The notes beneath the pieces are model-generated. The model was not told the DNA's origin, searched no databases, and saw only the letters and a program-made list of their open reading frames with translations. A stretch of 64,000 nucleotides of DNA from Phaeosaccion multiseriatum (taxonomy: Eukaryota; Protista; Ochrophyta, other classes), in the NCBI GenBank assembly GCA_965112735.1, contig OZ218961.1, positions 124,001 through 188,000 on the forward strand. The letters run 5' to 3'. The translations under genes and the position numbers were made by a program. Below, in pieces: positions 23,859 through 33,762 of the stretch (its first letter is position 1; every line of letters begins with the position of its first letter).

Positions 23859-24575
23859 CACACACACGCACACACACACACACGCACACACACACACACA
23901 CACGCACGCACACACTCACACACACACACGCACGCACACACTCACACACACACTCACACACACCAGCAGCTCTTAAAACCGAGTCCCCACATCCCGGACG
24001 TTGGGGCGTGGGTGCGTGTGTGTGTGTGTGTGTGTGCGTTGACGGCGTGTATGCGTGTGTGCGTGGGTGCGTGTGTGCCCACGTATCGTTCGAAGCAGCC
24101 CTACATGTTTATACATTTGGCTGCTCTGGTCCATTCGGATGGCCTTCGATAGATCGATAGCATCAACATGACAATGCCAAGCGAAGCATGACCAGAGGCA
24201 ACACATAAATGCTACTTTGGAGTAGTTGAATAGATTGAATTAAGTTGTTGAAAACTGAAAATTGCTTACAGATAAATACAGCGCCTAAAGAAAAAGAAAC
24301 AAAACGCGACGCACACACGCATACACAAGAAGGAAAACCAAGACCCCTCCCTCCCTGCCCGTCTCCCTGCCCTCTCCCTGCCCCTCCTGAAAATATAAAA
24401 AAAAAAGAAACCCTCCCTCCCTCCCTCCTTTCCCCGTAATACATAAAAAAGAAGCCCCGTCTGCAGCTCTCCCTCCCTCCCTCCTTCCCTCCCTCCCTCC
24501 CTCCCTCCCTCCCTCCCTCCCTCCCTCCCTCCCTCCGTCCGTCCGTCCCTCCCTCCCCTCGGGACCCCTCACAGC

Positions 24576-27500
24576 CTAAGAGGCGTCGCCGTCGGTTGTG
24601 GCTGTGGCTTTGGCTTTGGCCGTTTCATTGGCCGTTTCAGCTCCCTTCCCCTCCGCGTGTCCATTGTGACTCTTCGGGTTAGAGAAGGCTCCAGGGGAGG
24701 GGGAACCGTCCACCATGTCCATAGCGAAGCCCTGACGGGTGAGGTGAGGGGTGAGAGGTGAGAGGACAGAGATGAGGGGGGGAAAGGCACCACACGGGAA
24801 CAAAATCACAGCGTTGAGGCGCGAGTGATGCGATACACGAAGGAGAGAGGGATGGAGAGGAAGAGGAAGACGGAGAGAGAGACAGAGAAACGGAACGGAC
24901 GAGAGAGAGAGAAAGAGCGGCCGCCAGGAGCAGTCCTCCTCACGTACTACTACGTACTACTATGCAAAATGTAACGCACCAGGATTGTGTCCAGCGAGAG
25001 GATCTCGTCGTCTTGCTCCACCCCCGCCTCCTCCTCCTCCTTCTCCTCCGCCGTGGTCGCCAGCTGAAGAGTGCCCCTCTTGTTCTGCGGCTTGCTCCCT
25101 CTCGGTCTGTCCCCCTGTGCTTGCCCCTGTGCCTGTGCACCCACCTCCTCCTCCTCCTCCTGCTGCTCATCCTCCACAGCCCATACGCCTCCACCCGCCC
25201 CTCTCCCCTTGAACCCCCCTTCCTTCTCGGCCTGATTGGGGGACTTGATGATGGAGGACGACCTTCAGGCAGGTATATGGGCAAAGGGGGGCAGAATGAG
25301 CAGACAGGCAGGTATGTGGGCAAAGGGGGTAAAGGGGGGCAGAATGAGCAGACAGGCAGGTATATGGGCAAAGGGGGTAAAGGGACAAAGGGGGCCATAA
25401 TAGAGTGGGCAGGCATGCAAGTATATGGGCAGGCAAGAAGGAGAAGACATGTCGGAGTCAGGTCATGGATGGAGGCACATGGGGCGAGACCCTTTCCTTT
25501 GGGGGCATCCCGGGGGGGTTTCTGCGTGGCTGCCTACAATCTCTCTCGCCAGGCTCAGCTCTACTCTGCTTGGCTGCCTCTCACGCTCAGCCATCCCCAT
25601 CCATCCGTCTCTTCTTCTTGGCTCTGCTCGCCTCTTACCTCTCGGCGACGAACTGAAGGAACATGGGCGGGGGGGCGGGGGGGGGGAGGGGCAAAGAGCA
25701 AGGCAGGGTGGCGGGGGGCGGTGAGAGCAAGCTTGGATATCATGACAGCAAGCTTTGTACCTTTTGGACATCGCTGCTCAACTACGCATTCAGTTCCTCA
25801 GACCCTGTCCTGACACTCAGTCACCGCCCCTGACACTCAGTCAGAGTCCTGAAACTCATGAAGTCCTGACACCCACCATGGTCTTGACGTGTTCCATTTC
25901 ATCGTCTCGGATGTTCACAAACACGTCGTACAGACTGTGCCCAGGTAAAGGAGTTGGTCGTTGTCGTCGTTAACGGGTGTTGATAGAGTTAATGGGTCGA
26001 TAATGGATGTCGACAGACTAGTCTGCCGTTCATGGACGCTACCCAAACAACGCGAGACCATGCCTGATTAAAAAAAAAAGAAAAAAAGTAGATGCACACA
26101 CGCACACCCACGCACACACACGCACACACACACACACACACACGCACACACACGCACACACACGCACACACACGCACACACACACACACACGCACACACA
26201 CGCACACACACGCACACACACGCACACACACGCACACACACGCACACCCACGCACACACACGCACACACACGCACACCCACGCACACACACGCACATGCA
26301 CGCACATGGACATACATGGACACACATACACACACATTCTGTAGCAAGTGGTGCTCACACATGTTGTACAACAAGTGGTGCTCAAATGGTGCTCCCAGGC
26401 CATCCGTAGACAGCAAAGCACATCAAGCACAGCCGTTGGTGATACAGCAGAGAGAGCACACCAGTTGGTGATACAATACAGCGGAGAGAGGAGAGCAGAG
26501 CACACACCGCACATGCACTTCCATCCCTCTCCAGCTGGCGACTGTGGATGTGCACTCCCCTCACTCAATGCCCTCACCACTCACTTCTTAATGATGGGGC
26601 GCCTGGAGCCCGCAGCACTCGTGCTCTGAAACTCGTCGAACTGCGGGGGGGGAGGCATATGGGGTCATGAGTCAATGGAGCGGGGAGATTCGTATGTCAA
26701 TGGAGATGATTTAGGAGGGGACGAGCCCGACAAACGAGTAACCATGGTAGACTCCTCACTAACACCCTTATGTACCCTTACGTACCATGTACATGTCCCC
26801 ATTGACGTAATAGTCCACAGCCTCGATGGAGGGCGGCATGCTCTTGAGCAGCTCCTCGTTCGCTTCGAGGAATTCGCTGAAGTAGTTGGTGGTACGGCAG
26901 TTGGGTGGATTGGGACATGGCAGTCAGTGAGGCAGTCAGGCACTCAGTCAATCAGTCATTGAGTCGGTCAGTCGGTCAGTCAGTCAGTCGTTGAGTCAGT
27001 CGGTCCATCAAAGGCAATCAACCGATCAGTTCAATCAGTCGGTCCATCAGTCAGTCAGTGGGGGAGTCAGTCAGCTGTCAGTCAGTCAGTCAGTCAGTCC
27101 GCACAGGCAGTCCCCACGCACCCATTGACATACTCCACCCACCCACTGACATACTCCACCCACCCATTGACATACTCCACCCTCCCATTGACATACTCCA
27201 CCCCTCCAGTACTCCCTCCACTCAGTGGCACTCACCCACACGCACCCACCCACCCATTGACATACTCCACCCACCCATTGACATACTACTCACGTGTACG
27301 TGTCGACCGCGTGGCTCTCCAGGAGCTCTGAGAAATTGTAGGCAAGGAAGGGGCTGAAGGAGAAGAGCAGGTTCAGACTCCAGTAGTACATGATGGCCGC
27401 GTGGCGGGCGAGGAAGCGGTCTAGCCACTTTGCATCACCGCCCAAAGACTCCATTATGCTGTATAGATGAGTGGAGGAGGAGGAGGAGGAGGAGGAGGAG

Positions 27501-30500
27501 GAGGAGGAAATGAGGGGAGATATGACGACGAGGGGCTTAAACACACCCCTGCTTAGGTTCAGGCTCACTGACTTACCGCAGGTGGTGCGCTTCCGACCAC
27601 TCCTCCGCGAAGTGCACCTGCCAGCAGGTAGGTAAACAAACGCCACAAAACCATAAAAACACACACACGCATGCACCCCCCTTGAGTGTCAGGACTGACA
27701 GAGCCTTCTTAGGAGTGGAAGGCTACGAGGCGGTCACCTGTTAAGGGCATCCCCTTGGGTACTGCCCACTTGGGTCCTGCCCCCTTGGGTCCTGGCCCCC
27801 TGGGTACTACCCCTCCATACCCCACCGTCCCTGGGCACCCATCCCCTTTCCTCCCTGAAATCGTACGTATCCATTCACGTAAGGCTACGTGACGAGACGT
27901 ACCTTGCGGACCTCCGATCCGACGGCCCACCAGCCGAGCGTCTCGTACAGGTGCAGCATGCCTGACACCAGGCAGTCGGGTAGTCGGGTAGTCGGGTAGT
28001 CGGGTAGTTCAGGCCATCAGGCAGGGAGGAGGGGAGAGCACAGGGTACAGAGGGGAGGGGAGAGAGGAGGGGTGCGAGGGGGGAGAGGAGGGCGGAGAGG
28101 AGGGCGGAGAGAGGAGAGGCGAGGCGAGGAGAGAAGAAGAGAGGAGAGGAGAGGGGGGAGGGGAGGGGAGGGGAGGGGTTCGATATTCTGCCTTAGCCAA
28201 GGGGCGGTGGGGAACGACTGACTGAGTTGCTGACTTACTGAGGAAGGAGAAGTAGGGCATGCGTGCCACCATCTCGAGGAAGTAGAAGCGCTGAATGGGC
28301 TTGTCAGCATACACCACATCGAGGAACTTGCAGAGCCCATAATAGGACCACAGCACATACCTACAGGGGAGATGGCAGGGGATGGGGAAGAGAAGCGAGA
28401 GAAGGCGGGGGGTGGGAGAAAGAGAGAAAGAGAGAGAGGGAGGGTGTGTGTGTGAGAGAGAAAGAGAGAGAAGGGAGAGAGCGAGGGAGAGGGGGCGGAA
28501 AGGACGGCCCACCGGACCATTGAAGACACAGTCCCGGCGTAGCCCAACACCGGACCTCCTTACGTAAGGTGGTACAACATGCCTTACGTAAGGTGGTTCA
28601 ACATGCCTTACGTAAGGTGGCACAACATGTCTACGTAAGGTGGTACAACATGCTCACCATGGTGTATTGGTCCTCCTGAAAACAAGCACCGGTGTGGGGA
28701 ATGAAAGGTCGGACATAAGGTTACATCAGATTAGGTGTATGAACATGAGCTGACTTCAGCGAGACGGTGGCATTGGACACATGCAATGAATGCCCTGAAG
28801 GATGAGCTTGAAGAGCAGAAAGATGCAATGAATGCCCTGAGGGATGAGCTTGAAGAGCAGAAAGATGCAATGAATGCCCTGATGGATGAGCTTGAAGAGC
28901 ACAGAGGGGCGCTCGAGGCAGGCGAAGGCGTACCTGACAATAGTGGCAGCTGTCACACCAGAGTCGGACAGGGTCTTGAGCATTTCCTCAGTTTTGGCGC
29001 GGCGCTGGTCCTCGCGCTCCTGCACGGCAGCGTTGCTCAGCTTCAGCTTGGCCAGTTGGCTCTTCAATGCAAGGTTCACAGGGGGCGGGGGGGTGGGTGG
29101 GGAGTGGGGATGTGGGGGGGGGATGAGCCGATCAGGCATATGGAGGCATATGGTATCACATAGGGCATGCGTGATACACAAGCATCTATCCATCGTCCTT
29201 CTCCTCCTCCTCGTGCTTGCAAACTCGTTGACTTATGCTCGTCCTTCCCTCTGCCCTCTCCCATCCACTGCCATCCCCTCCCGCTATCCACCGCCCCCCC
29301 TCCCCCCCCTAAACATCACTCGGTGCCCATCCACTACCATCCCCCCACTCACCTGCCTGTCCCTAATGGGCTTTGGGATGAGGTCGCTGTTCGGCGGTCT
29401 GAGCTTAGGGAAGAGGAAGGAGGGCACCAATATCTCGAGCTTCTTGTCGCTGGCAGCCACCAGGCGCCCCACCCAACCACCGAAACCCTCGAAGCGGTAG
29501 GAGCGCCTTCGGCAGGGCGGAGAAGAGCAAAGGGGTGCGTAGGATGCGTGCTTGAGTTCGTGAGGACTGTTAGTCAGGGTAGTGGGATACAGATAGACGG
29601 CTCTCTGTTTGCCCTCTCTGCTCCTCGATATCGATGCCACTTGTCAAATGTCGAGGTGGCCGATACGTGGTGTCGAGCGAGTGTCGAGTATCGAGTATCG
29701 AGTGTCGAGTGTCGAGGCGAGCGAAAGACACACACTGTACTTTTCCTACCATTGGTTAGGGGTCTAATAAACTGTAACTGAACTGTACCCACCTGAGGGC
29801 CGTCCACTCTCTGAAGAAGGCCCACAGCCCCAGTCGGAGCCCGTTCACAGGGGTGGCCTGGGGGACACAGAGACAGGCAGGCATATGGGCAGCAGGAGAG
29901 GCAGTTCGTACGTAGTGTTACGTAACATTTACAGCTCCCAGTCAGGGTAGGGGGCTGGGGGATGAGGCACCCCCTGTGGGATTGCAGGGGAGTGCAGTTA
30001 CAAGGTCGGTCCTGCCTTGCCCCCCCCCCTCCCCTCGTATGCCTCCATCTGCCGCTCTGGACGTGATGCCCGACCGGACCAATGAGAACCACCCATACGA
30101 CTCCACCCGCCCCCTGTTTGTCTCCAACCCCTGCCGCCCATATGCCTCCACCCACCCTCCATATGCCTCCACCCGCCCCCTATCTGTCTCCATCCCCTGC
30201 CGCCGATATGCCCGCCGATATGCCTCCACCCACTCGCCTTCTGAAAGGCCCTGCTGGCGTCGGGTGCCTTGTTTCCGTAGCCGTACTCCTGCCCAGACGC
30301 CTGCCCCTCGAAGGTGGCCGAGGAGGAGGAGAGGGACCCCGTCTCCAGCTGGGAGAGCGTCTGGGCAAGCTTACGACCCACTGCGTGGGGGAGGATGGCC
30401 GTGGATGGGAGACAGGCGGAAGGATGGCAATGGATGAGAGGGGGGCATGGATGGCAGTGGAGGGGCGTGGGTGGGAGGGATGCTATATGCAGAGAACAGA

Positions 30501-30626
30501 GACGAACAGTGCAAATGCTCACAGGGCTGACCTCTCGCCGCCCCCCCCCCTGGGAGAGAGAGCGTGGCGGCTGCTTCAGTTCGCAAGTACACGCACCCAT
30601 ACGCACACACGGATAATAAGGACACA

Positions 30627-30661
<35 letters not shown>

Positions 30662-31595
30662 CCCAACCCCACCCACACGTACACACACACACGCGCACGC
30701 ACCTGAGGCTCCCATGACGGCCTTGACGGGCAGGCCGATGGAGGGGCTCGAACCCACGAGGTCGGAGAGCTTCCCCCCGCCCCACGACACCGTCCGAACT
30801 GACGCACTGAGGGCCCTGGCTGTGGCGGAGCGGCCGCCCTGCGTACTTCCCGCCAAGAAGCTTGCCTCCCCGACGAAGTCACCAGAGTGGAGAGAGTTGA
30901 CAATCTTGCCCTTCACCTCCAACTGGGCATCTCCTTCGAGCACGAGGTGCACGCGCTTGCCGCTGCCCGCCTCCCCCCCCTCTTCGGCGATGATGAGGTC
31001 CCCCTGTCCGAAGTCACGCACCGCTCCCGCCTCGAGCAGTGCCGCCCACGCCTCTGAGCTCATACCATCGGCCTAGGGGGACAGCAGCCGCACGAGCACA
31101 ACAAGGGGAGCAACAAGGCGAGACGCAGAGAGCCTTTCGTCAGTATAGAGAGAGGAGGGCATCAAAGTCAAGCGGGTCCTGCCTGCAAGGCGACAAGGCT
31201 CGAACGACAGCTACACCAGCGGTGAAGAGCACCCCGCAGCGTACACAGCATACCCGTAGCTGTTTGAAGCTCTCGCTGCTGTCGAGGGCATAGCGGCTCG
31301 GCAGAGAGGAAGGGGCTGGTGTTGTTGCAGGTGCTGCTACGGAGGAGGCTACCATCTGCATCCGCCCTGCTGCGCCCCGAGAAGGCCTCACGATGCTCGC
31401 AGGCCTCATCCGCTTCCTCCCACTGATGCTGCTGCTGCTGCTGCTGCTTCCCCAGCTTAGCGACGAGCAGGGCCTTGCTGCCGAGCCGGGATGTGTCGCA
31501 GGGTCCAGGCACATCGGCGGGCTGGCTTGGAAAGCCGTAACATGGCACGCTGCTGCTGCCGCACCAACCACTGCCAGTATGCAAGAAGGGCCCAT
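24576..31595 (-). CDS. PTOX: Plastid terminal oxidase (PTOX/AOX di-iron family) with an N-terminal cyclic-nucleotide-binding domain
   Basis: Presequence ...ACHVTA^FQ. cNMP-like exon 31072-30703. PTOX motifs [67 protein letters not shown] and [15 protein letters not shown]. How the last exons (below 25878) join is tentative. Confidence 0.85.
28558..28653. repeat. 24-bp repeat containing the palindrome CCTTACGTAAGG, 4 copies
   Basis: Directly visible, next to the micro-exon donor. Confidence 0.85.
28780..28900. repeat. 42-bp repeat, 3 copies, inside a PTOX intron
   Basis: Unit atgcaatgaatgccctg(a)aggatgagcttgaagagcagaaag. Confidence 0.9.
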
Positions 31596-32687
31596 TAAAG
31601 AAAGTGTTTCCTCCCTTGTTGGTCTGGGGCCTCTTCTCTTGAGCGGCGGAGGATTCTAGCACGGTGACCAAGAGCGGGGATGTCACGGCAAATCGCGACG
31701 AGTCGTGATTAAGGGAGAAAGGTCGAGAAAGGGAGGAACATGAATGGAGGTCGCAAAAAAATGTGAGTTTCAGCTGTGAGGGAACGGCAACGGCAAGTTC
31801 AACCGCCGGCTGCTCGGCCAGTGTCGCCTCAGAACCTTGTCAGGGGCCGAGAGGAGGAAGGGAAGAGTCGAAAAGAGGCCAGGGCTTCCCCCTCCCTCTA
31901 CTCTGCTCTACTGTTGTAGCATCGATGATTTGCGTGGGAGGAGGGATTAGTGGTTGGGAGGACTTTGTTGAGGCAGGCGATTGACGGCACGGTGGTCGCC
32001 TCGATTTTCACTGACTTCATACCGAGTGAGAGAGTGAGGGCCGCCTTGTTGCCTTGGACTCTTGTGGCAGAAGGATATGGTCTTGCTGGTTGGATGGTTG
32101 CCCCCGCCCCGCCCTCCGGCAGAAGGCTTGTGAGGAAGTATGTATACCCACGGCACCTTTAGCCCCTGCCTTCTCGTTGGGCCACAGCAGGCGGAGCGCT
32201 CTCTGTTCTGCACAGGCTTAGCTAGCTTTCAGTGACGCACAGTATCGGCCCCTGACATGCTTCTGAGACAGGCCAGCCCAGAAGCAGGAAGCAGGCCGGC
32301 TGGCGCCGGCCAGAAGCAGGAAGCAGCCTTGGCCCTCATCATTGCCTTATTACATGGCTGCTTTCCCCCAGAACCTGGAACCTGCCTGGCCGGCTGGCGC
32401 CGGCTAGAAGCAGGAAGCAGGGTCGCCTCAGAAGCATGTCGGGGGCCGAATAGTAGCCTAGCTACCGGAGCCTTCAACCGAGCTCCCGCAAAGCATGCTC
32501 CCGAATCAAGCAAGAGCGAAGAGAGGAAGGGAGGGATGTCGAAGTGTTCCTTCGTGAAGGAGAGAGCCTGTAGGGAGATACACTATGTAAGGAGGGACAG
32601 GGAGATGTATGTGTTAATGTATTGTGGTGTGGCATGAGGGGTGAGGGGTGCCCCATCTCTCCTTTATGGTGACAAAGCAGAGAGGAA

Positions 32688-33647
32688 CTAAGATTTGTAG
32701 TCTATGCCGGCGGCGTGCTGCCACCCGGATGGCAAGCCTTTAGGGGCGTGCTCCCACCCTTCCTGATAGAAGCTGTCGAGCTGTTTGTTGACGAACCAGG
32801 TGGATCTGTTGTGAGACCCGATGGTGTAGTACCCCTTACTGTCCATCAGCTGCTGGAGACGCTCGACGGCAGGGGTGCCTGTTTCCTTCCCGGTCTCTAT
32901 GAGAACGACACCGAAGTGGTACCGCGTAAAGTCCACTGTCTCGAGCACGCTGTACTCGGCGCCCTCGACGTCCAGACTCCAAAAGTCAAAGAAGAATTCG
33001 TCGCCAACCGCGTCTCGAAGAATGTCATCCATGCGCTGGCATTTGATGGGCGTACAGTCCTCCAGCCTCTGGTTTGGCCACCACTTCCTACGGAACTCAG
33101 GAGTGGCGAACTCGTATATGCCGTGCACTGCGGGCCGTTTTTGCACCCCACAGAAGTGGATGTCCTGCTCTGCCTCGCACACTGCCGCATTCACTGTGGC
33201 AAGCTCATTCTGCCGATTTCTCTCAAGCCGAATGAACTGGTCAGGGCTAGGCTCGATAAGCACACCCTTCCAATCCAGCGCTGTGTGGAAGGCTGCAGTG
33301 TTGCTATACTTGACCCCATCCAAGGCGCCCATTTCAATGTAGCTGCCTCCACAGACGCCTGCAAAGAAGCTCTTCAACAAATCGACGTCTTCACGCGATT
33401 GGGATCGAAAGACGCCACCCCTGACTCCAAGTGCTCTTTGAATCTCCAAGTCCGTTGCCATGTTGCCACAAGAATGAGCTGTAGAAGCTGGGACGCCTGC
33501 TGGCATCGGCTCCTCCTCCTCCAGCCTTCGGTATGATGTCCTTTGAGGGAGTGGGTCAGGCAAACTCGTTTCTCCCATCATCGAGTAGAGGATTGACCCC
33601 GCCATATAGGCGAGTGTCGCATATCCCGCACCCCGTGAGCCTGGCAT
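32688..33647 (-). CDS. FkbM-family (Methyltransf_21) SAM-dependent methyltransferase, intronless, with an N-terminal signal/anchor
   Basis: Motifs YIEMGALDG...SNT, WKGVLIEP, VNAAVC and FDFWSLDVEGAEYSVL; first ATG at 33647. Confidence 0.9.
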   Translation of the reverse strand: MPGSRGAGYATLAYMAGSILYSMMGETSLPDPLPQRTSYRRLEEEEPMPAGVPASTAHSCGNMATDLEIQRALGVRGGVFRSQSREDVDLLKSFFAGVCGGSYIEMGALDGVKYSNTAAFHTALDWKGVLIEPSPDQFIRLERNRQNELATVNAAVCEAEQDIHFCGVQKRPAVHGIYEFATPEFRRKWWPNQRLEDCTPIKCQRMDDILRDAVGDEFFFDFWSLDVEGAEYSVLETVDFTRYHFGVVLIETGKETGTPAVERLQQLMDSKGYYTIGSHNRSTWFVNKQLDSFYQEGWEHAPKGLPSGWQHAAGIDYKS

Positions 33648-33762
33648 GTTGTTGATTTCTCCTTTCCTTTTGCGTGTGTAACAAAGCGACAACTACAATA
33701 ATCCGTTACTACCCGCTCCGACGACGGCGTACAGCGCGGGGGGGAGCAAGCTATCAGGGAGC
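33648..33762. promoter_or_regulatory. Putative bidirectional promoter (115 bp between start codons)
   Basis: Divergent ATGs at 33647 (-) and 33763 (+); inferred from geometry only. Confidence 0.5.

Follow-up and report, generated by a model that had tools for sequence, protein, structure and literature searches.

The window, i.e., the whole 64,000-nucleotide stretch of DNA that we analysed, contains on its minus strand a gene predicted to join a cyclic-nucleotide-binding (CNB) domain to a plastid terminal oxidase (PTOX). It runs from 31595 to 24576 in 17 exons and 755 codons, with phases that stay consistent from ATG to stop (Table 1), which supports a preliminary description that had claimed a single spliced frame encoding a presequence, a CNB domain and PTOX. 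Position 31595 is the first in-frame ATG after an upstream stop, and all introns are GT-AG with the sole exception of 30237-29858, which is GC-AG. The fusion was tested by comparison with relatives, and exons were searched and folded one by one.

We infer splicing in the source organism from homology and sequence signals. Four sequencing runs from one study match the locus, and each contains approximately 95% of its words, introns included, so these runs are DNA; a search for RNA runs of Phaeosaccion multiseriatum found none. Homology suggests that the exon 7 microexon is used, and the frame would also be kept if it were skipped. The least certain part of the model is its end, i.e., the final two exon boundaries (25262-24980 and 24731-24576, as corrected).

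Table 1. Predicted exons of the CNB-PTOX gene, listed in the direction of transcription, with the evidence for each.
Feature	Position	Strand	Evidence
Exon 1: start codon, putative signal peptide (...VTA|F), transit-peptide-like region	31254..31595	-	GT donor at 31253; homologue signal peptides similar, ending A/S/G-F
Exon 2: CNB beta-barrel with phosphate-binding cassette (F-V-G-E-A-S-F ... G-R-S-A-T)	30703..31072	-	PF00027, AlphaFold, Foldseek, homologue alignment
Exon 3: rest of CNB C-helix (..RKLAQTL..), conserved (D/E)YGY motif, GC donor (GCGAGT)	30238..30380	-	Fused-family columns 364-424; GC3 0.85
Exon 4: conserved linker helix ATPxxGxxLGLW.F.RE..AL	29793..29857	-	Identity 15/21 to P0006 and 13/21 to Chrysoparadoxa P0036; tblastn matches at 29857-29792 from nine homologues
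Exon 5: linker (R-S-Y-R-F-E-x-F ... L-E ... F-P-K-L-R-P)	29353..29506	-	Collinear with homologue block RRSFRF..EF...ID.fLE...FP.L.P; GC3 0.82
Exon 6: linker helix (L-x-L-S-N-x-A-[VI]-x-x-R-E)	28934..29061	-	tblastn matches from 14/14 homologues; 11-18/42 residues identical
Exon 7: 18-nt microexon, conserved T-P-W directly ahead of PTOX core	28658..28675	-	Canonical AG/GT flanks, in frame; family T----PW columns
Exon 8: start of PTOX core, first iron ligand	28239..28360	-	22-28/40 residues identical to homologues; tblastn E 1e-9 to 1e-13
Exon 9: PTOX	27903..27961	-	13-17/19 residues identical
Exon 10: PTOX, ExxH iron ligands (S-E-A-H-H)	27577..27617	-	8-11/13 identical to full-length homologues; 7/7 aligned columns in truncated P0006; splice sites
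Exon 11: PTOX, iron ligand in N-F-S-E-L-L-E-S-H	27294..27458	-	Pfam AOX 30.6 bits (cut-off 22.7); 37-45/54 identical
Exon 12: PTOX	26786..26876	-	tblastn and alignment
Exon 13: PTOX-type insertion (F-D-E-F-Q ... R-R-P-x-I) ahead of last iron site	26585..26640	-	8-12/18 identical
Exon 14: PTOX, last ExxH iron ligands	25877..25934	-	14-18/19 identical; partial Pfam AOX match
Exon 15: 14-nt microexon, F-V-A-E matching the family's F-A-C-E after KTM	25639..25652	-	Splice sites, phase; alignment compared by eye
Exon 16: S-P-N motif, then low-complexity acidic tail	24980..25262	-	In phase, GC3 0.80; homologues have SPN, then variable acidic tails
Exon 17: end of tail and stop codon	24576..24731	-	AG acceptor, open to TAG at 24578-24576; least certain exon, without homology support

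Used alone as a phmmer query against 1.8 billion proteins, the CNB exon returned five representatives with both PF00027 and PF01786, including Tribonema minus, Chrysoparadoxa australica and an MMETSP mRNA. Full-length matches have the same CNB-linker-AOX order and come from Tribonema, Chrysoparadoxa, an MMETSP mRNA for which there are four assemblies, and further transcript contigs. A second round, seeded with these matches, added Ectocarpus, Pylaiella, Discosporangium and Nannochloropsis oceanica. Proteins with a CNB domain, a conserved linker and PTOX at full length occur in at least eight named stramenopile algae, plus transcript contigs; the preliminary description had proposed looking for this architecture in algal transcriptomes. 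The ORF of one homologue (P0038) is complete on transcript contigs of 2.1 kb, recovered in four separate assemblies, and another (P0010) fills a 2.3-kb contig, which is proof of the fusion at the mRNA level in a relative.

Fused members score at least 646 bits in a family profile search and plain PTOX at most 613 bits. A word-index search with the CNB and linker part of P0038 found three proteins only, because this part has diverged too far to share 5-mers; the whole-family profile did better. The window protein itself is absent from a 15-billion-protein collection, and the matches of an ESM Atlas feature search were all generic bacterial CNB clusters. This genome is not alone in having the architecture, which is already public, e.g., in Tribonema minus A0A835YR99 and in a Nannochloropsis oceanica ‘plastid terminal oxidase’. 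By these comparisons, the gene adds a new member to a CNB-PTOX subfamily of ochrophytes that is real, already visible in databases and found in brown algae, Xanthophyceae, Eustigmatophyceae and relatives. At the depth that bears on the origin of the fusion, the tree of PTOX cores is a polytomy, so the fusion may have arisen once or several times.

Members of the subfamily are currently labelled ‘alternative oxidase’, ‘CRP-like cAMP-binding protein’ or ‘unnamed protein product’, annotations which, as they stand, conceal a coherent family. No paper in the searchable full-text literature combines PTOX with a CNB domain (subscription-only papers, e.g., the 2015 Annual Review on PTOX, lie outside that scope), so within this literature the mode of control suggested below is, as had been supposed, undescribed.

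Exons 2-14 tile collinearly and gap-free on the fused proteins, including the 18-nt microexon and the 30238/29857 junction that had been flagged for checking, and only six columns clash. Using tblastn, 14 homologues gave ordered matches from 31.1 kb to 25.9 kb, and exon 11 (the longest and most informative core exon) has 69-83% identity to CNB-PTOX homologues. A GT donor 4 nt downstream of 30238 was considered and rejected: it breaks the frame and loses the gap-free F-x-x-A-T-P match to homologues. Between the CNB and PTOX domains, the only in-frame ATGs are at 29884 and 29193, both of which are intronic in the homology-based model. We also rejected these as PTOX starts, since neither yields a signal peptide and the sequence around them is either a pyrimidine tract or not conserved, which bears out the earlier statement that the PTOX part has no start or targeting peptide of its own.

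The locus could instead be a pair of neighbouring genes, one for a small CNB protein targeted to the plastid and one for a PTOX starting at, for example, one of these two ATGs, with the continuous frame arising as a coincidence of splice choice. This reading can draw on the in-frame ATGs upstream of exons 4 and 6, on the GC donor which one intron requires and on the predicted nature of splicing in the source organism. We nevertheless consider it extremely improbable, because single mRNAs in relatives encode the same domain order and because linker exons 3-7 align residue for residue to fused linkers, without a gap at the disputed junction. There is also a pyrimidine tract with CAG at its end upstream of 29857, the alternative starts lack a signal peptide, and GC3 in linker exons 3-6 (0.74-0.86) is of the coding type (PTOX exons 0.74-0.95; whole-intron GC 0.50-0.65). 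It is also very improbable that the fused gene has fallen silent or is decaying in the source organism while a different PTOX does the work. Although the evidence consists of the DNA of this locus only, all 17 exons are open throughout, the catalytic and cassette residues are all intact, and splice sites are canonical and GC3 high along the whole gene.

The fused gene's CNB exon scores 30.1 bits against Pfam cNMP_binding (PF00027; cut-off 27.5, E 4.7e-07), and it also matches PKG and PKA-R chains in the PDB. The preliminary description had read an intact GE and R(S)A phosphate-binding cassette here, and all the letters it quoted are present, including GGRSATARA. An AlphaFold model of the exon (pLDDT 92, pTM 0.85) places strands, a helix at 69-74 and C-terminal helices in the order expected of an eight-stranded beta-barrel with a cassette helix and B/C helices, and its best Foldseek matches in the PDB are CRP/CAP, HCN CNBD, PKA-R and PKG (TMq up to 0.79, E about 1e-7). 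With high confidence, the exon is thus predicted to adopt a CNB fold.

Binding of cAMP/cGMP by this domain is putative. Aligned to fused homologues, the exon has 32-44 identical residues of approximately 112 (29-39%). Cassette residues G68 and E69 are invariant across the family, and 12 of the 14 members retain P-R-[ST]-A-T, which reads R-S-A-T in the window protein. The cassette arginine has been lost in P0107 and P0115, so ligand binding is not universal in the CNB-PTOX family.

A rival reading is a fused gene whose N-terminal CNB-fold module binds another small molecule or none and instead has a role in PTOX dimerisation, stability or membrane positioning. Several observations fit such a module: Pfam scores across the family are only just over threshold (28-38 bits) and one member has no Pfam match to the domain at all; the cassette loop from Glu to Arg is longer than in PKA or CAP; and two members lack the arginine. 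Haem, 2-oxoglutarate and other molecules are among the ligands of CNB-like folds in the CRP/FNR superfamily, and we know of no demonstration of stromal cAMP/cGMP pools or cyclases in these algae. However, the domain's most conserved positions are G-E and R-[ST]-A-T, whose residues contact ribose and the cyclic phosphate, in lineages that are otherwise approximately 30-40% identical, as expected under selection for cNMP binding, and to our knowledge this pattern is atypical for non-cNMP members of the superfamily. We regard a module of this other kind as rather unlikely and continue with a cyclic-nucleotide-binding domain as the preferred reading.

The PTOX exons (28360 to 25877) carry all six di-iron ligands in conserved columns: LEM (exon 8), SEAHH (exon 10), SELLESH (exon 11) and DEMEH (exon 14), so the oxidase is complete, as first proposed. 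Collinear homologues score 44-101 bits against Pfam AOX (PF01786). The closest relatives with a name come from plants and algae and are annotated as PTOX or as ‘ubiquinol oxidase 4, chloroplastic’, and exon 13 encodes the insertion that precedes the last iron site. By these features, the oxidase part is of the plastid type and not a mitochondrial AOX, with a predicted plastoquinol:oxygen oxidoreductase activity. The acidic C-terminal extension noted earlier is there at 25262-24576, and homologues have comparable, variable acidic tails.

Read by eye, the N-terminus begins with a hydrophobic signal peptide ending in ...HVTA|F, followed by a Ser/Ala/Arg-rich stretch from which acidic residues are almost absent. 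Signal peptides ending in A, S or G and then F occur in the window protein and in homologues. Bipartite presequences are typical for algae with red-derived complex plastids, and exon 1 is a putative example.

In our preferred explanation, the locus is a single nuclear gene, and the alga that carries it, most likely a stramenopile, has a complex plastid of the red type. We think it somewhat likely that the CNB domain of the encoded CNB-PTOX is a ligand-operated regulatory module. The predicted product has approximately 750 residues: a bipartite presequence, one CNB domain, a mostly helical conserved linker of approximately 200 residues and a complete PTOX with its acidic tail. After import into the stroma, the PTOX part would lie on the stromal face of the thylakoid, oxidising plastoquinol and reducing O2, with the N-terminal CNB domain acting as its ligand-operated module. 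Binding of cAMP or cGMP would move the CNB C-helix and, via the conserved linker, change oxidase activity or membrane docking. If PKA-R, PKG, Epac and the cAMP-regulated acetyltransferase of mycobacteria are a guide, the likeliest direction would be activation, i.e., the ligand relieving autoinhibition.

We infer the ligand's identity, the stromal location of the CNB domain, and both the existence and direction of an effect on activity. In an AlphaFold model of full-length P0038 both domains fold, but there is no reliable interdomain contact (pLDDT 65, pTM 0.49), so the route that couples CNB to oxidase is speculative. Direct control of PTOX by cAMP/cGMP may follow from the architecture, and the fusion suggests a second messenger that directly controls the photosynthetic safety valve. 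This matters because the on/off switching of PTOX is poorly understood and the use of cyclic nucleotides by plastids is contested. The fusion predicts cyclases and phosphodiesterases acting in or on the plastid, and the cassette arginine offers a mutable handle for separating regulation from catalysis.

Compared with canonical PTOX (IMMUTANS/PTOX1 and PTOX2 of plants and green algae), the window protein shares the six-ligand di-iron carboxylate core and the insertion ahead of the last iron site, and its predicted plastid targeting would be a further common feature. In the oxidase core, named PTOX proteins have 45-55% identity to P0038, one of the fused homologues. What precedes this core in canonical PTOX is a transit peptide alone, whereas the window protein adds the CNB domain, a conserved linker and an acidic tail. 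The database CNB-PTOX proteins (Tribonema minus KAG5179955.1/A0A835YR99, Nannochloropsis oceanica, Ectocarpus, Pylaiella, Discosporangium and Chrysoparadoxa) have the same domain order, cassette and presequence type, and they have the linker motifs DYGY, ATP..LALWNF.REY.ALRRSFRF, LSN.A..RE and TPW in common with the window protein. They differ from it in the divergent CNB exon, and all are uncharacterised.

The CNB fold and cassette are also those of the PKA regulatory subunit, PKG, Epac and the mycobacterial cAMP-dependent protein acetyltransferase. In these proteins the CNB domain lies in cis with an effector, and ligand relieves autoinhibition; here, by contrast, the effector is a membrane-bound quinol oxidase inside an organelle. 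We know of no precedent for a CNB domain joined to such an oxidase, and none was found in the literature searched. Mitochondrial AOX with a regulatory N-terminal extension is a di-iron oxidase of the same superfamily and can be tuned via its N-terminal region or by nucleotides (redox and pyruvate control in plants, purine-nucleotide stimulation in fungi and protists). Its controls work without a discrete CNB domain, however, and the window protein is of the plastid type.

A parallel case is EF-hand-PTOX (e.g., Hemiselmis andersenii A0A7S0UC96 and the MMETSP/JGI transcripts P0113, P0114, P0130, P0131 and P0152), in which a second-messenger sensor is likewise N-terminal to PTOX in algae with complex plastids. 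The sensor there is a Ca2+-binding EF-hand array and not a CNB domain. The statement that PTOX is normally a single-domain protein therefore holds for canonical PTOX but not always. In the tree of PTOX cores, EF-hand-PTOX fusions are a clade of their own, with support, so PTOX has gained a second-messenger sensor more than once, and the presence of these fusions in other algae adds to the plausibility of second-messenger control. A wider proposal, which is tentative and whose chances we place slightly below even, is that stromal cyclic-nucleotide signalling in red-derived complex plastids acts through CNB-PTOX as a direct gate on the oxidation of the plastoquinone pool. Taken with EF-hand-PTOX, this would amount to a general, unrecognised principle outside the green lineage: second-messenger control of the safety valve or of chlororespiration.

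We read CNB-PTOX, which joins a cyclic-nucleotide-binding domain (CNB; Pfam cNMP_binding, PF00027) to a plastid terminal oxidase (PTOX; Pfam AOX, PF01786), as a single gene with a conserved architecture and phosphate-binding cassette, a predicted CNB fold, a plastid-type presequence and catalytic residues that are all intact. It lies in a eukaryotic, GC-rich region with many short introns bearing tandem repeats. Exon boundaries were taken from the sequence and then checked by arithmetic, and the reading frame is kept through 17 exons (see table). Fifteen introns are GT-AG, with a single GC-AG exception. Across 24300-31800, most CNB-PTOX introns contain their own tandem array, the unit differing between introns (periods of 2, 4, 8, 10, 15, 21, 24, 42 and 48 nt). 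Standard gene finders would easily overlook both microexons. The upstream neighbour, a single-exon gene about 1.1 kb from the CNB-PTOX start, encodes an FkbM-type methyltransferase.

Features of the CNB-PTOX locus, with exon placements on the alignment of fused relatives
Feature	Position	Strand	Length	Remarks
CNB-PTOX	31595-24576	minus	755 codons	first ATG past a stop, to stop
CNB exon	31072-30703	minus		
E2				CNB barrel
E3				C-helix and (D/E)YGY motif
GC-AG intron	30237-29858	minus		donor GCGAGT
E4				ATP..G..L.LW.F.RE..AL
E5				R-S-[FY]-R-F
E6				L-S-N-x-A..R-E
E7 (microexon)	28658-28675	minus	18 nt	T-P-W motif, for which it is required; canonical splice sites
E8-E14				oxidase part
PTOX core	28360-25877	minus	seven exons	complete
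E15 (microexon)	25639-25652	minus	14 nt	required for F-x-x-E after KTM; canonical splice sites
FkbM-type methyltransferase	32688-33692	minus	334 aa	Pfam PF05050, 66.5 bits

Four sequencing runs contain this locus. About 95% of its words, those of the introns too, occur in these runs, which are therefore genomic DNA. Because only such runs cover the locus, the fusion was tested by comparison with relatives. Queried with only the CNB exon, phmmer returned 105 hits among 1.84 billion representative proteins. In five of these a lone CNB match lies at the N-terminus and a long stretch of protein follows it, and Pfam found cNMP_binding and AOX in all five: Tribonema minus KAG5179955.1 / A0A835YR99 (annotated 'alternative oxidase'), Chrysoparadoxa australica, an MMETSP transcript, a 2.3-kb Logan contig and a JGI/Logan protein named 'CRP-like cAMP-binding protein'. 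Further searches, first with the MMETSP protein as query and afterwards with a profile of this family (CNB-linker-PTOX proteins), added Ectocarpus, Pylaiella, Discosporangium and Nannochloropsis oceanica ('plastid terminal oxidase'), each with both domains, and partial models from Laminaria and Phaeothamnion. Fused members scored 646-891 bits against the profile, versus at most 613 for ordinary PTOX. The Tribonema minus protein as deposited carries an 18-residue PTOX segment twice in tandem (F-V-E-x-N-K-E-L-L-x-S-L-P-P-P-P-E-A, alignment columns 730-760), explained either by an exon that was recently duplicated or by an artefact of the gene model.

The combination of domains that the preliminary description proposed seeking in algal transcriptomes is thus present there. 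Four separate transcriptome assemblies contain 2.1-kb contigs on which the MMETSP protein is a complete ORF flanked by short untranslated ends, and the Logan protein occupies the whole of its contig; the fusion therefore exists as mRNA in relatives.

With 14 family members as tblastn queries, hits fell in order along the minus strand of the window, from 31.1 kb to 25.9 kb. The exons were aligned to the family one at a time, each as its own fragment, and E2-E14 were consecutive with almost no overlap; by eye, the F-V-A-E of E15 and the S-P-N of E16 agree with the family as well. Frame and family match are continuous across the junction flagged earlier for checking (30238/29857, at the GC-AG intron), where F-Q-K|A-T-P in the window aligns gap-free with F-x-x-A-T-P in homologues. 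A GT donor 4 nt downstream was rejected: it loses both the frame and this match. GC3 of linker exons E3-E6 (0.74-0.86) matches that of the undoubted PTOX exons, with whole-intron GC at 0.50-0.65, and the intron after exon 3 has 21-nt and 12-nt tandem arrays, as in this gene's other introns. Collinearity of E2-E14, the gap-free junction and the E15 and E16 matches make two adjacent genes, in place of one fused gene, very unlikely. The single spliced gene originally proposed is therefore upheld, as a sequence-based prediction for Phaeosaccion multiseriatum itself; its last two exons, E16 and E17, are likewise predicted.

All peptides first quoted for the barrel lie within the CNB exon (E2), which scores 30.1 bits against Pfam cNMP_binding (cut-off 27.5) and, in a PDB sequence search, finds the CNB domains of PKG and of PKA regulatory subunits. 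AlphaFold, given this exon with the family alignment, predicts a CNB fold (pLDDT 92, pTM 0.85) with canonical strand order, a short cassette helix and two C-terminal helices. Foldseek matches in the PDB are CRP/CAP, GlxR, PKA-R, PKG and the CNBDs of HCN and TAX-4 channels (E about 1e-7, TM up to 0.79); the modelled structure agrees with the cNMP/CAP-like barrel initially described.

CNB identity across the family is only about 30-40%. The cassette Gly-Glu is invariant and Pro-Arg-[Ser/Thr]-Ala-Thr occurs in 12 of 14 sequences; the window keeps Gly-Glu and R-S-A-T, an intact cassette as reported. These residues hold the ribose and cyclic phosphate in known receptors. Two members, P0107 and P0115, lack the Arg. 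This pattern argues for ligand binding that is real in most members and lost in a few. The main alternative, a CNB-fold module that binds another ligand or none, we regard as possible but rather unlikely.

P0115 (MMETSP transcript, 664 aa) has a PTOX core almost identical to that of Vitrella brassicaformis P0129 (487 aa). It also carries the family linker, and its CNB-like region is degenerate and gives no Pfam hit. Chromerid alveolates thus seem to have the fused type too, and the gene model deposited for Vitrella may be truncated N-terminally.

Read by eye, the N-terminus is a hydrophobic signal peptide ending ...HVTA, then Phe and a Ser/Ala/Arg-rich stretch nearly without acidic residues. 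Bipartite plastid presequences of algae with red-derived complex plastids have this pattern, and plastid targeting is predicted. The PTOX exons contain all six di-iron ligands (LEM, SEAHH, SELLESH, DEMEH), and one alone passes the Pfam AOX threshold. The acidic C-terminal extension is present, a variable acidic tail being found in every family member.

The window's own protein was not found in the protein collections searched, and its CNB exon is at most 39% identical (44/114 aligned residues) to its closest relatives. On these grounds we count it as a new member of a PTOX variant visible in databases, yet undescribed. Our search of the literature open to full-text searching found no paper tying PTOX or AOX to a CNB domain, in keeping with the suggestion that such control is new; a Nannochloropsis physiology paper mentions just 'a PTOX homologue'.

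EF-hand arrays are also fused to PTOX, in a separate clade (SH-aLRT 99) that includes the cryptophyte Hemiselmis, so sensor-PTOX fusions arose more than once, and EF-hand-PTOX is, by sequence, a second, independent fusion. Its members (P0113, P0114, P0130, P0131, P0152, P0137; one from Hemiselmis andersenii) have N-terminal arrays and span 534-1038 aa; short 'plain' PTOX within the clade look like N-terminally truncated fragments. The PTOX core tree lacks the depth resolution to separate one from several CNB-fusion origins. Micractinium conductrix 'plastid terminal oxidase isoform B' (P0236, 1284 aa), with protein-kinase domains and AOX, may be a further fusion or a merged gene model.

In the mechanism we propose, the CNB domain would sit in the stroma beside thylakoid-bound PTOX and bind cAMP or cGMP, and binding would displace the C-helix and conserved linker, altering oxidase activity or membrane docking. 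Both domains fold in a full-length AlphaFold model of a homologue, whose pTM of only 0.49 means that interdomain contacts cannot be reliably read from it. Our guess at the direction of this effect, drawn from the analogy of other CNB domains that regulate in cis, is that ligand would relieve autoinhibition.
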